Below are positions 36,269-45,521 of a DNA stretch of 64,000 nt, in pieces. Both the position numbers and the translations under genes were made by a program. Within the stretch, counting starts at the first letter, position 1, and each line of letters opens with the position of its first letter. Origin of the DNA: Pelomyxa schiedti (lineage: Eukaryota; Protista; Evosea); the NCBI GenBank assembly GCA_020536535.1, contig JAHLWZ010000579.1, forward strand, positions 1-64,000. Reading direction: 5' to 3'. Under the pieces are notes generated by a model. That model did no database searches, was not told the DNA's origin, and worked only from the letters and a program-made list of their open reading frames with translations.

Positions 36269-39200
36269 TCACTGTGTGAATCCCACTAGCACTCCTTGTT
36301 TGTTTCTTATGCTTCCTGTCACAGTGATAAAGCCACTGCTCCAGCCATCCATGAAGGTCAGTGCAGCAATTATTTTATCAGTTCCATAAAAGTAATGCTC
36401 AATGCACTTCTTCTCGGCGGGGGACTTGCCTTGCATACCATGCCCCCATGTTGCACACTCCATACCATTGACTAGAAGAACGTGAGAGGAATCAAGAACC
36501 AGATTGTAAACTATTCCGCTTGGGTTTGCTACCTCTTTGGCACCTGTGATATCCCTTGCTGGGTGCCACATACCTTTCACCCTAATCGGGTGTTTCCCAG
36601 TGATTTGTAGACCACTTGGTAGTTCATATAGAGGCTTGGAATGTGAACTGATTTTAATAACACACATGACAGAGGCAATTCCGCCAGCAACTAGCACCTT
36701 GTCACCTCTTTTTAAGGTGTCAATGGTTGTAGTAGAGAAACTGGATTCCGGGCTTGCGGCAATGTTTACTCTGCAACCTGGAGCAAAGCAACCACCACTA
36801 GAGCCTGCATAGTAATTATCCATGCTGTTATCAGGTGGAGGTGATGGTTCCCTGTAAATAGGAGGTGGAGATGGCGTTCGGAAACTAGGTGGTGGTGCTT
36901 GAGCTGCCCTCTGTGCTTGAATACGTTGCTCTTCCTCGAATTGTAACTGCTGAAGTTGTTGAATCTGACGAAGTTGCCACTGTTGAATCTGGGGAGAAGG
37001 TGTCTGTGGAGTTGAAGGCTTTGTGGGTGCTACGGTTGGAGCCGGCTTGGGTTCTGGAGGAATCCTTTTTGGCTTCTCAAGATTTTTGAATATTTTGCCA
37101 CCCCTGCTTCTCTCCTCTACAAAAAGCTTCCCGCAATATACTTGTAAACTGGAATCCATGAAATTAGTGCAAATCTGAATCTGGTGCGCTCTGACAAGTG
37201 CTCTCACATAATGTCTTCCCCACCTCATGAATCGTTCTTTTGTGGATAACGCCTTAGTAACTCGGCCCTGCACATCGGCGGAGAGTGTGCGGATACGAAT
37301 ATCACAATCTGCACCTTGGGAAGTTTCAATTTGCGCTATTTTCGTTTTCATCTCTGCAAGCTGACGGTTCGCAGTCATTCCTTGCCTATTTGAAGCAAGT
37401 TTCACGACTTGATTTAAGCAGTCAACAACATTGCATCGCACGAGTGCGGCCATAGAATCCATAGATGGTGTTTTGGCGTTACCAGATATCACTTCTCTTA
37501 TTTCAGAACCCTCCGGGCTGCATATTGCATTACATTAAACCGGTTTTTTACGGGGGCATTGTTACCTTGTGTAGACCAAAACAACCTCAAGATACTCCTC
37601 ACTAGAAAAAGTCATGTGCATAGGTACAACAATATCTCGCATCTGACCACACTGTAAAGGTCCAAGGGATACCATTCTCCCCCATTCGGTATTTGATGTA
37701 GGCAACCCGCCAAGGACATCTCCTGCAAAACGGGCGCCATTCTGGGGGATAAGGTGCAGCGTCGATGTCTGCACCATTCCACTGACAGCATTGGAAACAC
37801 TGTCAACAAAACATGTGCCAACAATTTTGGCATCCGGTATGAAAGCAAAAGTGCCTCCAGCCATGGTTGCCAGTTCAGTTAGCAAATCGCTATCAACACC
37901 ATAACTTGGAATTGTTTAGATAGATAATTACATTTGAAGGCGTAAATATACCCAAAGCCAAAGGTATTGATCTGAAACGTAAAACCTGGGTATTTTTCAA
38001 CATATTTCCGCAATTCGGCAGTATGCCCATGAGGTGGTACAATGGTAGGTAGGCCATCTGTCAAAAGTAGAACAAATTTTTTTCTGGGACCAGTCTTTGA
38101 AGTGTCTCGGAGTGCTTCCAGCCCTGCAAGAAGCCCAGACCAGATGTTTGTGGATCCAGCAGGTTGCATTCGGTTTAGTGCTTGGTTTGCTGTGTTCATA
38201 CCAGAGGGGGTCATTTCAGAGAGTGGGAAGTGAGTTGTGGCATAGTCATCAAAAGCAACCAAAGCCACACGGTCTTCTGGAGTAAGCATGTGCATAACAG
38301 TTTTGACAGAGTGTTTCACTAAATCCAGAATGGTTATACCATCATCGTGTAGAACACTGTTATCATGCTCGTCTTGATATTTCGCAGTCTCCGCCATAGA
38401 TCCACTTATATCAATTACGCAGCAGATGTCCACAGGAAGTCTCTTTGTGAGATCAGGTACTTTAATTCCTATGCTAACATTCACAGGAGCAGTTGAACCT
38501 AGAACTACAGGTTCACAAGGTGTCACGCTCACTTGAATAAGACCAGGGGTGAACTTATGCCCCTGATCCATTTCTTCTTCCTCCCAACCATCAGAGGTCT
38601 GTGACGTTGCCGAACTACTTGCAGTGGGTGTGGTAGTGGGCTTAGTGGGGGTCGCAGTTGCCGTGGAAGAGAATTCCTCTTGAGCATGCGTTGGCGTTGT
38701 TGTTTGTGCCGATATATTGAATGCAGATAAGGGGGCATATACTGAACGCTCAGAGGTTGGAGAAGCACTTACAGGAGTGCTAACATCTACGTCAGCACTC
38801 AAGCCGAGTAGTTGAGCCAAAGTCGGGGAAGCGGGTACGTTGTTAGGGGGTGTATTTGTAACAGGAATTTCACTGTCGATTTCTTCCAGCTTCAGAACTC
38901 CGGTGTTCTCAGTATCTGGCTCAAGAATTCCGCAGGAATACACCCGAACGAGCCCGCTAATAGCACCCCTGCAAATCGGGCACTCATTAGTGGTCCTCTG
39001 AATTGCAACCAAGCACCCACTGCACCCACACTGGTGCCCACATGGAACAACAAGGTGATCAGCCACCAAATCCAAGCAAATAGCGCACTTTGCCTGCTGC
39101 TTCGAACTCTGGTTCTGAGCCTGATTCTGGCTCGCGTTCGCGGCACTCTGAGTCTGTTTTTGCGGAGCCGGGGTGGCACTCACACACTTGACCATCAGGG

Positions 39201-39923
39201 CGTGGACCTGGTCGACCGGGAGCTCGGCGTCGATTACGTGGATGCGGCCGCCAAAGTGGGGCAGGACCAGGCCCAGCTGGGCGTAGTAGGCGCGCAGCCG
39301 CGCCCGCACGACGCGCTCGTCGAGGTCGTGGGCGCGGCGGACGAGGCGGGACGCGGGGACGTCGGGCGGCGGCGGGGACAGGGCGTCGTGGTACAGGGCG
39401 CCGGTGTCGCGGTCGACGAGGCGGCCCAGCACGCGGCGGACGCAGACGTCGTCCGAGGCCTGCAGGACCAGGACGCGCTCGACGGCGACGGCGGCGGCGA
39501 GGGCGCGGGCCTGGTTGGCGGTGCGCGGGAAGCCGTCCAGGAGCACCGCGGGCGCCGAGGCGACGTCGGAGTAGAGGTCGCGGCGGGACAGGCGGTCGTG
39601 GATGAGCGCGATGACGAGGTCGTCGGGGACGAAGCCGCCGCGCGCGATGTAGGGCTCGACGCGGCGCCCAAGGGGGGTGCCGCGCAGCACGGCTTCGCGG
39701 AATATGTCGCCGGTGGATACATGCAACATTCTGCGGGGAGAGGTGAGGGAAAGAAAGTAAGCTCGTGGGTTGGGTACAGAACCCCCCCCTTTGAAGGCAC
39801 AAAGGGGGAAAAAAAACGCAGGGGAATGCGACGGCCATACCCAAGTTTGGCAGCGAGTAACTTAGACTGGGTTCCTTTGCCTGAGCCGGGCGGACCAGCT
39901 ACCAGGATTACCCGCGACGACAT
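36269..39923 (-). CDS. Fusion protein: adenylate kinase - C3HC4 RING - VWA - Vwaint - Hint/Vint domain (4 exons)
   Basis: ADK (GPPGSGKGTQ|GMLHVSTGDIFR, VPDD, LLDGFPRT, LID GRLVDRDTG); RING CAICLD...PCGHQCGCSGC...CPICRG; VWA with intact MIDAS (DISGS, GSTN, LLTDG); Hint starts G/CFAPG (Cys codon 36788-36790), with ITGKHP, VYNLVLD and ECATWGHG. Confidence 0.9.
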
Positions 39924-40201
39924 AACCGACACTCTTTTGGTTTTTCTTGAGTTTTTCCTTGAACTGATGAAACCACTGTGCATCTGTCGCCCAAACCAAA
40001 CTCGACGTGCCCCATGTTAATAACTATGAATTGCACGTGGAATTTGGACACCTCTGGTAGTGGAAAGTCTGACAACTACGGAAAAAACTCCCCAAGTTGG
40101 AGAGTACCCACGAACTTTTTTTAGAAACTTGTTGTTACGCAGCCAAATACCAAACCAACAAAACACACAAAAAAAACACAAAAGCAACACACACCGCGGG
40201 G
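39924..40201. promoter_or_regulatory. Putative bidirectional promoter between two head-to-head E3-ligase genes
   Basis: Only 278 bp separate the two ATGs; the interval contains a CACGTG (E/G-box) core and A-rich tracts. Function is inferred. Confidence 0.4.
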
Positions 40202-43200
40202 ATGCAGAATTGGCAAAACAGAGCCAACACCCCCGGCAACCTACAGAGTAGCCAGACCGCACCGCCGCAGTCCTACTACGGCTACCAGTCACCGCAGCAG
40301 ACGCCCATGGGAGGCAGCGGGGGAGGCTGGCCAGGTGGTGGTGGTGGCGGTGGCGGTGGCGGCGGCGGCGGCGGCGGGGGTCCTCCTGCCATGTACCCGC
40401 CGTACAACCCCCTCACAAACAGCGGTGGCTTCAACAACAACCCCAACAACATGCAACCGCAGCAGCAGCAGCAGCCGTACCAGAGCAACTACGTGGCGCA
40501 CCCCGCCGCTGCGGCCACCGGCTCCCCCAGAACTCCGCACCAGCCCCCGGGGACCCCCGCCGCGTTCAAGCCGCCAACGTACTCCCCCCAGCCCCCGTCC
40601 GCGTATACGCAGCAGCAGCCACAGGCACATACTAACTATCAGGCCAACCCACCATACACGTACACCTACAACCAAAACCCTCCGCCGCCGCAGCAGCAGC
40701 CGCAATACGGCGGCCCCACGGGCTACACGGGCTACAACCACACCAACACCTACAATCAGCCCCCGCAGACGCAACAACAGCAGCAACAGCAGCAGCAGCA
40801 GCAGGCGTGGACCCCGCCGCCAGTGAGCATGCCGACACCCTTCACGCCGCCGCAGGCACGCCAGCCGGCGGTCGTCGGCCCTGTCATGCCAAACACCTCG
40901 CCCACTCCTGCGCGCTCCCCGGGAGGTACTGGCGCGGCCAACGCCAGCCCGCAGGTGCTGCGCCAGTCTGGGCATGGTGCCTCCTACACTGCTATGCCGC
41001 CGCCCACGCCGATGCCCATTCCTACGCCGATAAGGGTCCCTGGGCCGCCGGCGGCGGTGGCGCAACAACAGAACCAGCAGCACCGGTCGCCGCAGCCGGC
41101 GCACCCAAGTCAGCCTACGACGGCGCCTAACCAAAGAACTAACAACCCCAATACTCAATGGCAAAATCCAGGCCAAGTGCAGTCCTCGTTCATCCAGAAT
41201 CAGTATCACGAGAACGGCATGCAGAACATGTCTCAGCAAGGTCCTGTGGCACAACAGCCACTCACTTGCGGTATAGGAGGCATGAATCTAGGGAGTCCCA
41301 GTTCTGGTATCTATAGTGGCGCATATAGTGTTCTTGGCGCTCTGAACAATCAAAGTCCTGGCGCCACACCCACACCTCTCAGGTCTTCTGGTATTGAAGA
41401 GGCGCCAAGTCCATGTTCCTCCGCGAATGCAAAACCTAGAACACTCCAACCCCATTCCACAGCATCGAACGACTCCCAAGTGCCCACCAACAATCTTTGT
41501 TGTACCCCAAACAAGCCGATGCCTTCTCCACAAGAGAACAGGTTTACTGCTAACAATCCCGGCCCGACAACACTGCAACCATCAACTCCCATACCGTCAT
41601 ATCCTTCCCAGCCAATCCGCACACCTTCACCACCAACACAGGTAACCGATTCATCAGCCAGGCAACTTTGTGCAAATCGCGTGGAGCCAGTACAACCAAT
41701 ACAACCCGCACTCCCTGAACCTTCTCAATCAAGCCGGGTACTTACAACTCAGCCGGTCGCCACACCTGTCTCTACTTCCTCACAGCCAGTCACCTCTGTG
41801 CCCCCACCCTCTACACATCCAGCACCCACATCCCCTCAGCCGACCCCCATTGCATCTCGACCAGCAGAGCCGCTCCCAGTGGCGCCGCCAGCAGCTTCAC
41901 GATCAGCGCCTTCCCCACCACCGGTAACAAACGGACCACCCGCCCTACGTATTGTCACCCAGCCAGTGGCAAATCCCATGGAAGGTTCAACAATCCGCGC
42001 CAGCAACAATGTGAGGGCAGCAATTGAGGGCGAGGCTGATATTGAGAGGTATAATGCTGCAAGTAAAGAAGGTTTCTTCACGATATGCTGCTGGTGTGAG
42101 GACCGACCAGTTGTGTCTTGTGCTCGAGTGAGACCTCGTTGCACTGGTTGTGGATGTGATGCTGTTACACTTAAGAGCCAACCTAAAAATTGGCAAGAGA
42201 TGTGCTTTGACGGTGTTGAAGCTGAATGTTATGCGTGTGCTGCCCCAAATGCCCGGGCTGTACATTTCGCGCGGTGTGGGAATCAAATTAGCCCTGCTGT
42301 CAAAGAATCTCACCCAGGGCGATACAAGAGAGAGCAAACTATATGCAATAACTCTGATGTAGTATTCTCCCAGCTTCTCTTTGGCAACGCTGGAAAAAAA
42401 GGGCAATGTGCTATTTGCCTGTCACCAGAACCAGTAAGCACCATTCAATTTCAGCTTGCACCTGAAAAGACTTTTCTTGTAGGTTCTCGTCTTTTTCCCG
42501 AAGCCATGTCTACATTTTATTTGTCCCTCTTGTTTTGCGTCGGCGTGGACTGAGAGAATTCAACAAAGAAGATTGCCATGGAATGTAGAAAAGCAGTGTG
42601 TTGGAATAACCTGCCCTGGTTAGTATTAGATATTTTCAACAAATTAAGATAACACACAAATAATAAAAGCTGGCTGCCAAGTTTTTGTCAATGATATCCA
42701 CATTCTTAAACTTCTGGGAGATAAGTACTATAATATCTTCAAAGATATGAGCGCCTCCAAAACTGCTTTAGCTGTAAGCCTTTCCTCCATTTCACAACCT
42801 CTGACCCACAAGTAGAATATGGGCCTCTGTGGTGTATACTGTGCTGTTCCAAAATGCTCTGAAGTACCCTTTATCCCCATTGCTTTAGATCGCAATTTTG
42901 CTCAATGTCCTACTTGCAAGGTACGCAATAACCAATTCCACTGATTTCCAGTACGCTCACTGTGGTAATAAAAGAAATACACATGCGTAGTTTGCCAGGA
43001 ACAAGCTGGTAATTGTATTTGCACTGGTGTTGATCCAAGTGCACTTGCAAAGTATAGAGTTACTGTTGAAGGTCTTTTGCATGTGACTGAATACACACAT
43101 AACTTAATTGTTTTTAGGTCACTTCTGTCAAACTGTTACCATACCAGATCGGTTCCGATCTCACCCACTCAGTATCAGAGGCCCCCGAAACATGACTATA

Positions 43201-43998
43201 AACGTATTTTTTTGTCCCCCGATTTCTCTTGCCACATGTACTTTTTCCGTAGATACATGTCGATGACACTCCCAGAATACTGAAATGCTTGATCGAGAAA
43301 CAGATCAACCTTCCATGTTTCAAGCAAAAACTGATTTTTGCTGGGACACAAATTTCCGATGACGAACCTCTTTCGAATTATGGCTTGGCTGCCAATACAT
43401 GTGTACATTTGATTCCTCTTGCCGATTCGGCTCCCTCAGCCGCCCGGAGCGACCCGTAATCTTTCTTCCATTAACAAGGCGAGTGTTCTCACTAAATAAT
43501 ACACTTTTCAGCGCTTCAACAAGACCAGTGGCTACACAGACAACGACCCCCACGACTCCATCTACAAGAGCGTCACCAGCGACTGTTCCGACGAATGCAC
43601 AAACTACACCAGTACAAGTGTCAAGTGCTGCAGTACCAGATCCGCCTTTCATAGGAAAGAGGTGTCCTTCCTGTAACACCCCAATTGTGCACTTCAAGTA
43701 TGAGGAGCCCTCCCTTTGCTTTTTTTTCTAACATACAAAAGATACCATGGATGTCATCACATCAGACCTGGTGGTGGTTGCCCCTCCTGTGGCTTCCATT
43801 TCTGGTAAATACAAAACAACAAACCAACAAACAAACTAATGCAACCGCAGCTTCAATTGCCTAGGCCGGCACCCGTGCCCCACTTGCCCTCTGTGGTGCA
43901 ACAAATCATGCACTTGCCCACCTTGTGATGAATGCAAGCCCCATAAACCTTGCAAATTCTGTGATGGGTGCAACGTATGTGAACCCACAGACTACTAA
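40202..43998 (+). CDS. Parkin-like RBR E3 ligase with permuted architecture: Q/P/G-rich N-terminus - RING0 - RING1 - IBR - Ubl - RING2 - Cys-rich tail
   Basis: RING0 FFTICCWC...RVRPRCTGC...QPKNW...ECYAC...HFARCG (~42068-42283); RING1 CAICLSPEP|VLVFFPKPCLHFICPSCF...TCP|AGC...IHILKLLG; IBR CAVPKC...CPTCK|KYTCVVC; Ubl KQKLIFAGTQI...NTCVHLI; RING2 KRCPSC...HGCHHI...CPSCGFHFC|FNC. All introns are GT-AG. Confidence 0.9.
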
Positions 43999-44103
43999 AC
44001 CACCTCATCAGCATAATGTTTATCTGGCAGTAATTTAAATGTTTTTTCCTCTTTTTTTGCAACGAAAATCTTGGCTTACGTGGCAATTTATCTCGTATCT
44101 ACT

Positions 44104-45521
44104 ATGGTTGGCGTTCGTACGATCACGGCCCTCGTCGCCCTCGTGCCCCTCGGTCTGTGCGTGTACTCTGTGCTCACGATCTACCCCGTCGTGCGCTTGG
44201 CCTCGCTGCTCCTCGAGGACCCTCCCAGCACCGCCGCGTTCTGGGCCGCGTGCGCGTGCCCCTCCCTCGCCGTCCTGGCCTCGCGGCTGGCGGCGGATTT
44301 CGTGTGGCCCCGCAGCCTCGCGGCGCGGGGGGCCGGGCGGGCGGGCATGCTCGTGTTCGGCTGCGTGTTCCTGGCCCTGTGGCCGTGCCTGGCCTACGAC
44401 GCTGCGGCGGGGTCGCTGCGCCTGCTGCTGCCCGGCGCGGGGGCGTGGCTGGGCGCCCGCGAGCGCGCGGCGGGGGTCGCCATCGCAGCGTGCGCGGGGG
44501 CGGCGGCCTGCGCGGGGGTGGTGAAGGCGCAGCTTGTGTGCGTGAGGAGGTTCGTCGTGCCTTCGAAGAAGGTGTCGAGGCCGTTCACAATTGCCCATGT
44601 TTCAGGTGTGGGTGGGAATTCTAGGATATCTGTAATTATGTAATTTCGTATTCCTGTATTGTATCGTGTATGTAGGCATGCATGTCCGCCACTCTGGATT
44701 TGAAGTTACTCTTTCAAATTGAACACTCGTTTATGTATCTACCTCAGCAATTCGTTTTTTCCCCTTTCTCTTTATTTGTTGGTGGTAGCTTTACCTTCTT
44801 CTTTTGTCACACTCTTGATAGACATTCATGTGGGTTCCCGTTCTTATTCCTGGCTATCTCGAGTTGTGGACAAAGTTAGTTCCCTTGCGCCAGATTACGT
44901 TGTAATCACCGGAGACCTCACGGATACAAGAGGATTGGAACCAAGAGACTTACTTCCTTTGGAAAGGCTCACCTCTCGAATCTTTGTGACACTTGGGAAT
45001 CACGATTTTTGGAGCGGGGAAGAACGCGTAGTGAACGCTCTTTCCAAGTTGAGAGCCAAAGTGACTGTTTTGCGAAATTCTCTATCCTGGAAGGGTCCTG
45101 TGCAGTTCATGGGCATTGATGATGTTGAATACACCGCGGACTTTAATAGAATTTTTGATGCACTAGCGGGATTGCGGCAATTTGACTCCTCCAAATTCAC
45201 AGTAGTACTGCACCACAGGCCTCACAATGGCGGAATACAGCATGTTTCTGATTCTCATTCTGTTGATATGTTTCTTGCTGGTCACACCCACGGCGGTATT
45301 TCTCCTCTTTTTTGGAATCAACAAAAAGCTTATTTTTTCGTGTAGGTCAGCTCTATCCCCTCAAGTTTTTCATCAAACTTGCGTTCTGGCATATCAGCGG
45401 TCTTCTTCACACAGATTCCTTTTTTGCTTACACATCCCCTGGGACTGGGACTTGGGGTCCACCCCTCAGATTATGTGATCAAAACACAATAGCCCTATTT
45501 ACAGTGACCCCCGTTGAATAG
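44104..45521 (+). CDS. Membrane-anchored calcineurin-like metallophosphoesterase (YkuE/TMPPE family); start uncertain
   Basis: N-terminal TM helices followed by DIHVG, ITGDLTD, LGNHD, LHHRP, AGHTHGG|Q and the family tail SPGTGTWGPPLR. Confidence 0.9.

Follow-up and report, generated by a model that had tools for sequence, protein, structure and literature searches.

The question raised by this locus is whether an anaerobic amoeba encodes a Parkin-like RBR ligase in which the ubiquitin-like domain (Ubl) lies not at the N-terminus but between the IBR and RING2 domains. Few ubiquitin ligases have been studied as intensively as Parkin, owing to its part in Parkinson's disease; an older survey called it an animal-specific RBR subfamily (PMC2904391), and according to another report both PINK1 and Parkin are missing from Entamoeba histolytica, a relative of this amoeba (PMC9796589). 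An earlier note on the window, a stretch of 64,000 nucleotides of Pelomyxa schiedti DNA, had proposed from sequence alone that positions 40202-43998 form a single spliced gene for a Parkin with a relocated Ubl, in a host whose mitochondria are probably reduced.

The reading of the locus as one gene held. The in-frame splice model comprises ten exons with a CDS of 3360 nt, contains no in-frame stop and gives a protein of 1119 aa. All nine introns are of the GT..AG type with lengths of 42-56 nt, and each is present as a joint in the RNA contigs of three single-cell RNA runs (X1-X3).

40202..43998, + strand: whole coding region, 10 exons, 1119 codons plus stop, 9/9 introns seen as RNA joints
40202-42433, 42483-42618, 42670-42773, 42816-42920 and 42975-43071, + strand: exons 1-5, from the in-frame splice model and RNA joints
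43118-43203, 43253-43455, 43512-43697, 43742-43804 and 43851-43998, + strand: exons 6-10, from the in-frame splice model and RNA joints

The joint between exons 1 and 2 is found in an RNA contig of X1 (record 1), and a single RNA contig of X2 (record 6, 1228 nt) joins exons 2-10 through the stop codon; the Ubl and RING2 are therefore not a separate gene but lie on the same mRNA as RING1 and IBR, so that one of the findings that would have refuted the original proposal was not made. Only the start of exon 5 had to be corrected from a first guess, to 42975, where the RNA contigs place the end of intron 4 (42921-42974) and where the C-x2-C of the IBR is restored. An in-frame acceptor at 42998 and a 13-nt mini-exon at 42952-42964 had been considered and were ruled out by this RNA-defined intron, which also does not correspond to a third candidate, the out-of-frame acceptor at 42990. 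The three differences between RNA and DNA within the CDS are all synonymous, and three cells contain correctly spliced transcripts of the gene. The RNA covers the gene only from around 41270 on, which leaves the 5' third of the ORF, ~350 codons, supported by nothing beyond an uninterrupted frame and its first ATG; downstream of this point the gene model, its transcription and the domain order are shown. The motifs quoted in the earlier note are also present in the spliced sequence, with SPEP/VLVF across the exon 1/2 junction, CP/AGC across the exon 2/3 junction and GCHH, with its Cys codon at 43752-43754, in RING2.

The protein consists of about 600 aa of P/Q-rich low-complexity sequence followed by RING0, RING1, IBR, Ubl, a 59-aa linker of mainly T, P, A and S, and RING2, with the following limits.

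40202..42019, + strand: N-terminal low-complexity region, aa 1-606, P/Q/S/T/G-rich, from Pfam and composition, with RNA only from ~41270
42071..42349, + strand: RING0, a unique-Parkin-domain homolog, aa 624-716, from HMMER profile alignment to human Parkin 8ikm_A and a structure search
42407..42773, + strand: RING1, aa 736-824, across introns 1 and 2, from Parkin-only profile matches and residue alignment
42816..43022, + strand: IBR, aa 825-875, across intron 4, from the RNA-defined exon 5 start and alignment to the Parkin IBR
43023..43152, + strand: post-IBR segment, aa 876-903, across intron 5, conserved with Pelo_2487 in a three-way alignment
43153..43420, + strand: Ubl, aa 904-976, across intron 6, from Pfam ubiquitin and a profile against ubiquitin
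43421..43653, + strand: flexible Ubl-RING2 linker, aa 977-1035, across intron 7, T 20%, A 18%, P 18% and S 13%
43654..43998, + strand: RING2 (Rcat), Cys-rich C-terminal extension and stop, aa 1036-1119, across introns 8 and 9

A phmmer search of 1.84e9 representatives with the RING0 piece found only two relatives, Pelo_2487 (KAH3765652.1, 740 aa, E 6.7e-16) and Pelo_3794 (KAH3764327.1, 460 aa, E 3.2e-10), each a Pelomyxa schiedti "hypothetical protein". Since both homologs come from this species the host is an archamoeba, and the reduced mitochondria supposed for it are borne out by the hydrogenosome-like mitochondrion-related organelles of Pelomyxa schiedti (PMC8887013). Three other entries from the same search (P0002, P0003 and P0005) were repeat proteins matching the short string HFARC and are not relatives, and two metagenome loci matching the RING0 piece were sugar-kinase-like genes that share the octapeptide HFARCGNQ, a spurious likeness. 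Word-index homolog searches with the exon 1 region, the family alignment and region 100-372 of Pelo_3794 returned nothing or only the query, low-complexity words having swamped the candidates. Single-sequence phmmer lacks the sensitivity to recover even the Parkins of animals, and that it returned Pelomyxa alone does not show that other lineages lack such proteins.

The full window model matches Pelo_2487 with an E of 9e-85 across RING1-IBR-Ubl-RING2 and Pelo_3794 with an E of 5e-58; the window protein is 34-38% identical to the two, and intron positions, including that of the intron within the Ubl, are common to all three genes. Pelo_2487, which is encoded on a different contig, has the same RING0-RING1-IBR-Ubl-RING2 order as the window protein, but differs in a short N-terminus and in an additional ~210 aa of zinc-finger-like repeats that separate RING0 from RING1. 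Pelo_3794 has the same RING0-RING1-IBR-Ubl order, but ends right after the Ubl without a catalytic RING2 and lacks both the Thr and the His at the equivalents of Ser65 and His302. There is an archamoebal family of at least three genes sharing the RING0-RING1-IBR-Ubl order. In the literature searched on Parkin in protists or Archamoebae, neither paralog is named or described, and no description of the window protein or its relatives was found.

The closeness of RING0 and RING1 to Parkin, as originally claimed, was upheld by profiles, paralogs and structure search. By itself, the window RING0 piece reaches no more than 11.9 bits against Pfam zf-RING_12, and in a phmmer search of the PDB it did not match Parkin, giving only a chance metacaspase match; the Parkin link is therefore transitive, via profiles and paralogs. 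The RING0-RING1-IBR family profile, which includes the window piece, matched 24 Parkin chains in the PDB over one continuous stretch (E 9e-18 to 5e-10), the next match being noise (E 0.06) with no other RBR at E<=1. The RING1-IBR profile with the window exons matched Parkin only (E 3e-11), as did the single sequence of Pelo_3794 (22 chains). Pelo_3794 reaches 30.4 bits on zf-RING_12 (cut-off 25) and 34 bits on zf-RING_14 (cut-off 26.6), and Pelo_2487 reaches 35.8 bits on zf-RING_14 (cut-off 26.6); these zf-RING_14 scores come from the paralogs, the window RING1 being split over three exons and not scanned directly. When the window RING0 model was compared structurally with 48,161 chains, Parkin RING0 took the top five places (Z 5.7-3.6). 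This model and that of Pelo_2487 served only to rank folds and to set the limits of the Ubl: with a three-sequence alignment, the mean pLDDT reached by AlphaFold2 was 46.5 on the window RING0 piece and 45.0 on Pelo_2487, too poor for inter-domain inference. The best PDB match of RING2 is Parkin (E 3e-4), with ARIH1/2 weaker, and the RING2 of Pelo_2487 best matches the Parkin RING2 chains 9c5e and 2lwr, with Cys and His aligned and its Cys-His-His aligned to the Cys-Met-His of Parkin. Where the sequences align, ~20-26% of residues are identical to Parkin, and ESM Atlas look-alike searches gave no discrimination among RBR subfamilies. There are other RBR ligases with a Ubl, for example HOIL-1L/RBCK1, which combine an RBR module with an N-terminal Ubl serving regulation or recruitment and have no RING0; such proteins were not among the PDB matches of the RING0-RING1-IBR and RING1-IBR profiles at E<=1. 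Each of the zinc domains RING0, RING1, IBR and RING2 is thus Parkin-specifically similar, in part through profiles and paralogs.

At the residue level, RING0 Cys 629, 632, 647, 650, 676, 679 and 692 align with Parkin zinc ligands in the family profile against 8ikm_A, matching seven Cys positions of the eight ligands (C150, C154, C212, H215; C166, C169, C196, C201). The H215 column holds Gln695 in the window protein, Asp in Pelo_3794 and Tyr in Pelo_2487; an extra RING0 Cys, Cys715, is invariant across the three-protein family and might replace the missing ligand, a possibility that is only inferred. In Parkin, K161/R163/K211 form the RING0 patch that receives the phospho-Ubl and K151/H302/R305 form the phospho-ubiquitin pocket, and the roles of REP and C431 are known from the same work (PMC11368401). 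The columns of K161, R163 and K211 are all Arg in the window protein (R642, R644 and R691; profile alignment), and H800, K803 and Y810 in RING1 align with H302, R305 and Y312 of the phospho-ubiquitin pocket, whereas the K151 column holds Cys630 in the window protein and Thr in both paralogs, and the H302 column holds Ser in Pelo_3794. The last zinc site of the IBR is C-x2-C-x6-C-x-C, with Cys873 at the position of Parkin H373. By sequence and alignments, the zinc ligands of RING1, IBR and RING2 and the catalytic Cys and His are all intact.

The position of the Ubl between IBR and RING2 was also upheld, although its first strand, at ~43153 in exon 6, shows that the span of 43192-43414 first given for it began too late. 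Exon 7 alone scores 36.4 bits on Pfam ubiquitin (cut-off 25.4), I948 and H972 are the equivalents of Ile44 and His68, and Thr969 (codon 43397-43399) occupies the Ser65 position, which is Thr632 in Pelo_2487 and Ala in Pelo_3794. The Ubl equivalent of Pelo_2487 was modelled by AlphaFold2 at a pLDDT of 68-91. The best match of the Ubl profile is ubiquitin itself (~40 bits per domain), and Parkin Ubl is absent from the 60 best PDB matches, a list so crowded by ubiquitin variants that this rank is uninformative. That the Ubl was relocated is not shown; with its best likeness to ubiquitin itself, an independent insertion is possible. The N-terminus of ~600 aa of low complexity held as described: aa 1-606 (P 20%, Q 13%) match no family in a Pfam scan, hence contain no recognisable domain and no Ubl, and Pfam scans found no trace of an N-terminal Ubl in the window protein, Pelo_2487 or Pelo_3794. 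In the explanation we prefer, a disordered region of ~600 aa takes up the N-terminus, with the reservation that RNA cover lacks the 5' third.

The Ubl lies where animal Parkin has its REP, as had been noted, but the homology of the intervening segment is undecided. No similarity to Parkin REP is detectable in the post-IBR segment, the Parkin alignments extending no further than the IBR; the corresponding stretch of Pelo_2487 is modelled as a helix with a pLDDT below 50. The segment is perhaps a helix, on this low-confidence model, and a REP homolog has been neither detected nor excluded. The earlier suggestion that the Ubl is tethered directly to RING2 failed on the word directly, as a flexible linker of 59 aa lies between them; it is 30 aa in Pelo_2487, its length not being conserved. 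In RING2, Cys1054 (codon 43752-43754) and His1056 form a Cys-His-His motif in the same columns as in Pelo_2487. At the sequence level they are the catalytic pair, placed by alignment, and enzymatic activity itself is inferred, without assay data.

An RBR ligase is expected to have RING1, IBR and RING2 in order and the RING2 Cys in the catalytic column, which is the case here. Of the features expected of the Parkin family, a RING0 immediately before RING1 is present (profile, paralog Pfam score and structure search), a Parkin-type RING1 is supported by the paralog zf-RING_14 scores and the Parkin-only RING1-IBR profile, and the phospho-Ubl receptor patch is met at the residue level by R642, R644 and R691. 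An N-terminal Ubl is not, the sole Ubl being located after the IBR, and the protein is therefore classed as a Parkin-family homolog with non-canonical architecture and not as a canonical Parkin. Placement of RING0 outside the Parkin family would have refuted the proposal; profile and structure searches gave Parkin only, but no RBR tree stands behind this result. The window protein is likely a Parkin-homologous RBR; whether it is an ortholog of animal Parkin or belongs to a sister lineage of RING0-bearing RBRs is unresolved without such a tree.

Compared with animal Parkin (PRKN; the set included human, rat, Bactrocera and Pediculus structures 4K95, 5C1Z, 6GLC, 6DJW and 5CAW), the window protein has RING0, RING1, IBR and RING2 with the RING2 Cys and His, keeps K161/R163/K211 as R/R/R and H302/R305/Y312 as H/K/Y, and has a Ubl that carries an Ile44-type patch and, at position 65, a residue of phosphorylatable type. 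In contrast, its Ubl lies between IBR and RING2 whereas that of Parkin is N-terminal, it has no recognisable REP helix or ACT element, and it begins with ~600 aa of low complexity. Further differences are Thr instead of Ser65, unconserved H215 and K151 equivalents, the extra Cys715, Cys for the last IBR His, a Cys-rich extension after RING2 and a host that is an anaerobic amoebozoan with mitochondrion-related organelles.

The strongest rival explanation is that a RING0-RBR ancestor without a Ubl captured a ubiquitin-derived domain in its IBR-RING2 linker while animals added an N-terminal Ubl separately, so that the two are analogous and nothing was relocated. The closeness of the Ubl profile to ubiquitin (~40 bits), with no Parkin Ubl in its 60 best PDB matches, and the untraceable N-terminal Ubl in all three proteins support this. 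Against it, the crowding by ubiquitin variants makes the Parkin Ubl rank uninformative, a phosphorylatable Thr stands at the Ser65 position in the two proteins that keep His at H302, and the RING0 basic patch for the phospho-Ubl is conserved, in keeping with a Parkin-like switch however the Ubl arose. On balance we lean slightly away from independent capture, under which the Ubl could possibly instead bind proteasome or ubiquitin receptors or act as a donor or acceptor mimic. The alternative that pocket residues are coincidental, in a constitutive RBR without phospho-regulation or a degenerating inactive copy, draws on the unconserved H215 and K151 equivalents, on Ser65 being replaced by Thr and on Pelo_3794, which has lost RING2 and the counterparts of Ser65 and His302, evidence that loss of function is tolerated in this family. 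This is unlikely in view of a transcript correctly spliced in three cells with only synonymous RNA/DNA differences, intact RING1, IBR and RING2 zinc ligands, an intact catalytic Cys and His and the Arg/Arg/Arg patch.

Horizontal transfer of a Parkin gene from an animal or other holozoan, followed by rearrangement and duplication in the Pelomyxa lineage, would mean that this gene says nothing about an ancient PINK1/Parkin system. The description of Parkin as animal-specific (PMC2904391), its reported absence from Entamoeba histolytica (PMC9796589) and the finding of only Pelomyxa proteins in the representative library point in this direction; however, identity to Parkin is only ~20-26% in aligned stretches, the single-sequence search missed even animal Parkins, so that a restriction to Pelomyxa is no evidence of absence, and nine short host-type introns at positions common to three paralogs that have diverged to 36-38% identity indicate long residence, making transfer very improbable. 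A gene-model artefact, with two adjacent genes (RING0-RING1-IBR and Ubl-RING2) or an assembly chimera, finds some support in Pelo_3794, which ends right after the Ubl, so that a shorter product is possible in the family. It is practically ruled out by the one RNA contig that runs from exon 2 to the stop through all its junctions without an in-frame stop, and by the repetition of order and introns in Pelo_2487 on a different contig.

The preferred reading is that the locus encodes an expressed, Parkin-homologous RBR ligase with an internal Ubl, its activity being inferred. Following the general RBR mechanism, E2~Ub would bind RING1 and ubiquitin would pass to Cys1054 of RING2 and then to the substrate, with RING0 presumably holding RING2 inactive. 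More tentatively, the internal Ubl would be the switch. The unphosphorylated Ubl may bind RING1, a docking that is conjectural as the models are poor; phosphorylation of Thr969 by a PINK1-type kinase may then allow the Ubl to bind the RING0 basic patch, neither the presence of PINK1 nor the acceptance of Thr being established. On that patch it may compete RING2 off RING0, as we propose, because it is chained to RING2 by the flexible 59-aa linker. The probable targets would be the mitochondrion-related organelles of the amoeba or intracellular prokaryotes, for which there are no target data.

A bolder reading, which is possible but no more, is that PINK1/Parkin-type phospho-ubiquitin signalling is older than animals and has persisted in an anaerobic amoeba that lacks classical mitochondria, where a re-ordered Parkin, its Ubl chained to RING2, would be switched on by PINK1-like kinases and would mark hydrogenosome-like organelles or the many prokaryotic endosymbionts for autophagy. 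There is continuing debate on whether Parkin Ubl activation is a cis or a trans event (PMC12954527, PMC11368401), and if this reading were true the permuted order would be a natural experiment in which the Ubl drives RING2 release in cis from the opposite side.

In conclusion, a RING0-bearing Parkin relative is now placed in Amoebozoa, a lineage where Parkin was thought absent. Its Ubl lies on the RING2 side while the basic patch of RING0 and the greater part of the phospho-ubiquitin pocket are kept, a combination that offers a natural test of which switch geometry is essential, and the three paralogs, one complete, one with extra zinc fingers and one without RING2 and the switch residues, resemble a small natural mutant series. 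In a host that harbours many endosymbionts and, in place of mitochondria, has nothing but anaerobic mitochondrion-related organelles (PMC8887013, PMC10579272), the finding raises the question of what the targets of such a ligase may be.

The window gene (40202-43998, + strand) encodes a Parkin-family RBR ligase homolog in which, as the earlier note had claimed, the ubiquitin-like domain (Ubl) lies between the IBR and RING2 and not at the N-terminus. Pfam was run on pieces of the window protein and not on the full spliced product; exon 7 by itself matched Pfam ubiquitin with 36.4 bits (cut-off 25.4), and no N-terminal Ubl was found by Pfam in residues 1-606. The domains of the window protein, in residue numbers, are as follows.

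1-606: P/Q/S/T/G-rich region without a Pfam domain
624-716: RING0-like (unique-Parkin) domain, Cys-rich
736-824: RING1
825-875: IBR
876-903: short conserved segment after the IBR
904-976: Ubl
977-1035: T/A/P/S-rich linker
1036-1119: RING2 carrying Cys1054-His-His1056, followed by a Cys-rich tail

The catalytic Cys codon named in that note (43752-43754) is correct; the Ubl is not tethered directly to RING2, as the note had it, but joined to it by a 59-residue flexible linker. No match resembling REP, the Parkin autoinhibitory element between IBR and RING2, was found in the Parkin alignments of a RING1-IBR profile, because these alignments stop at the IBR; in the conserved post-IBR segment a helix is predicted by AlphaFold with low confidence only.

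The gene model was built from window 39800-44400 and its three forward frames, and comprises ten exons on the + strand, with the first ATG of the long open frame at 40202, a TAA stop at 43996-43998 and a final coding sequence of 3360 nt (1119 residues). Contigs of three single-cell RNA-seq runs labelled protist metagenome (X1-X3) were aligned to window 39900-44300, and all nine introns were seen in them as GT..AG joints; no intron joint was present among the contigs of one further run of the same study, of unrecorded library type, compared over the same interval. A single 1228 nt RNA contig (X2 record 6) extends from exon 2 through all later junctions to slightly beyond the stop codon, and the exon 1-exon 2 junction is covered by X1 record 1, so that the exon joins passed the RNA-seq check proposed for them. 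The RNA places intron 4 at 42921-42974, revising the sequence-only junction, and exon 5 therefore starts at 42975, by which eight residues are gained and the C-x2-C of the IBR is restored. The three mismatches between the single-cell RNA contigs and the window inside the coding sequence, at 43560 (A>C), 43641 (T>C) and 43772 (T>C), are all synonymous and at third-codon positions; so far as the data show, they reflect allelic or between-cell variation in the population and not editing. Since RNA cover begins only at ~41270, the first ~350 codons are supported by the open frame alone.

The upstream neighbour (36269-39923, - strand; ORF 37879-39729), head-to-head toward the 5' end of the window gene, has an adenylate-kinase-like N-terminus to which a RING finger and a region resembling von Willebrand A are fused. 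Downstream, a GC-rich ORF (44071-44643, + strand), hydrophobic and probably encoding a multi-pass membrane protein, starts ~70 bp past the stop; it is a separate transcript, because the RNA contigs of the window gene terminate at 44009-44015.

In an exhaustive phmmer search of 1.84 billion representatives with the window RING0 piece, only two true relatives were retrieved, the Pelomyxa schiedti paralogs Pelo_2487 (P0001; 740 residues, E 6.7e-16) and Pelo_3794 (P0004; 460 residues, E 3.2e-10), both annotated as 'hypothetical proteins'; three other matches were repeat proteins with a short common string and not relatives. Likewise rejected were L003:956-1045 and L004:4001-4090 on metagenome contigs, pfkB-type sugar-kinase-like proteins that have the chance octapeptide HFARCGNQ in common with the window RING0 in a pattern scan. 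The full window model matched Pelo_2487 over RING1-IBR-Ubl-RING2 (E 9e-85, 38% identity) and Pelo_3794 over RING0-RING1-IBR (E 5e-58). The Ubl follows the IBR in both paralogs, and their intron positions, from exons mapped at the fetched loci, match those of the window gene, including a phase-1 intron in 'CP|xGC', an intron at 'CK|KxTC' and a Ubl-internal intron common to all three genes (MTIN|IHVD, YTIN|YHLD, LTVT|VSRE). This marks the internal Ubl as inherited within the gene family and excludes an assembly or annotation accident. Similar GC content and short introns, like the two paralogs themselves and the origin of the sequencing runs in one study, tie the window gene by inference to P. 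schiedti or a very close relative.

Pelo_3794 (L002:5001-6711, contig JAHLWZ010000291.1) encodes RING0-RING1-IBR-Ubl with a stop directly after the Ubl; no RING2 exons lie downstream of it, a SIR2 gene beginning ~150 bp on, and the protein possibly serves as a regulator or decoy without catalytic activity. Pelo_2487 (L001:77-3622, contig JAHLWZ010000194.1) has ~210 extra residues between RING0 and RING1, forming three zinc-finger-like repeats ('GYKC..C' units), and part of its model may be uncertain because two 100-N scaffold gaps (1244-1343 and 2144-2243 of L001) fall in this repeat region.

The link to Parkin is weak from the window piece alone, which scored 11.9 bits with Pfam zf-RING_12 and, as a RING0 query, did not retrieve Parkin by phmmer against the PDB; from the family it is strong and specific. 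Pelo_3794 scored 30.4 bits with zf-RING_12 (Parkin RING0; cut-off 25) and 34 bits with zf-RING_14 (Parkin RING1; cut-off 26.6), Pelo_2487 scored 35.8 bits with zf-RING_14, and all 22 PDB chains retrieved by phmmer with Pelo_3794 were Parkin (best E 5e-10). A RING0-RING1-IBR profile made from the two paralogs and the window exons retrieved 24 chains, all of Parkin, at E values between 9e-18 and 5e-10, with noise next at E 0.06, and the RING1-IBR profile retrieved Parkin only (E 3e-11); with neither did other RBR ligases present in the PDB (ARIH1, HOIP, HOIL-1, RNF216 etc.) appear at E 1 or better. The RING2 of Pelo_2487 matched Parkin RING2 best (9c5e, 2lwr; E 3e-4), with the catalytic Cys and His aligned and ARIH1/2 next and weaker. 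The AlphaFold models were poor (mean pLDDT 45-46). In an unbiased structural search of 48,161 chains with the window RING0 model, ranks 1-5 were Parkin RING0 (chain residues ~141-224; Z 5.7-3.6), followed by unrelated folds (Z <=2.6); Parkin-type entries made up most of the top ten in an AlphaFold-DB cluster search, and Foldseek with the Pelo_2487 model gave Parkin at the top and ubiquitin next. The Parkin-family reading is thus supported by the RING0-RING1-IBR profile, by Pfam on the paralogs and by the structure searches, with no RBR tree behind the placement.

At rank 10 of the AlphaFold DB search stood A0A5A8BZX2, a 334-residue 'Ubiquitin-like domain-containing protein' whose residues 212-282 match the window RING0 model; if its host is a protist, proteins with RING0 and a Ubl occur beyond animals and Archamoebae.

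Residue equivalents were taken from family alignments and from human Parkin (8ikm_A, numbered as chain index + 140) aligned by HMMER. The RING0 zinc ligands C629, C632 and C692 correspond to Parkin C150, C154 and C212, and C647, C650, C676 and C679 to C166, C169, C196 and C201; the H215 column holds Gln695, for which the family-invariant extra Cys715 might, by inference, stand in. The Parkin basic patch K161/R163/K211, the receptor of the phosphorylated Ubl (PMC11368401), is R642/R644/R691 in the window protein, and H302, R305 and Y312 of the phospho-ubiquitin pocket are H800, K803 and Y810, whereas K151 of this pocket is not conserved. In the Ubl, I948 and H972 align with Ile44 and His68 of ubiquitin and Thr969 with Ser65. 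The window protein differs from animal Parkin in Thr for Ser65 and in the equivalents of H215 and K151. Pelo_2487 retains Thr at the Ser65 position and His at the His302 position, and the RING2-less Pelo_3794 has Ala and Ser there, a co-variation with RING2 loss that, in three sequences, is merely suggestive.

The window protein has the full catalytic apparatus of an RBR ligase together with a Parkin-type RING0, as judged from sequence; its ligase activity is inferred. By inference from Parkin, RING0 would mask Cys1054 and the Ile44-type patch of the Ubl would bind RING1. The Ubl would move to the patch formed by Arg642, Arg644 and Arg691 once Thr969 is phosphorylated, once phospho-ubiquitin occupies H800/K803/Y810, or both. 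As the flexible linker ties the Ubl to RING2, Ubl binding to RING0 would compete directly with RING2, releasing the catalytic Cys.

The earlier note had called the Ubl relocated, and the choice between a moved and a newly captured domain is undecided, the best match of the Ubl profile being ubiquitin itself. The parkin subfamily was called animal-specific in an RBR survey (PMC2904391), and Entamoeba histolytica is reported to lack PINK1 and Parkin (PMC9796589). No description of window-family proteins, or of any RBR whose Ubl separates IBR from RING2, was found in the literature searched, the coverage of which was incomplete, so novelty is unproven; the P. schiedti genome paper mentions neither parkin, PINK1, mitophagy nor ubiquitin. 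The observation in the earlier note is confirmed and its interpretation supported, with caveats on REP, Ubl origin and the RBR tree. Pending such a tree, the window gene most likely represents a known family with a new domain arrangement in an unexpected lineage. The mitochondrion-related organelles of P. schiedti are hydrogenosome-like (PMC8887013), and its cells harbour prokaryotic endosymbionts (PMC10579272); with no target identified, organelle quality control and endosymbiont control are possible roles for the protein.
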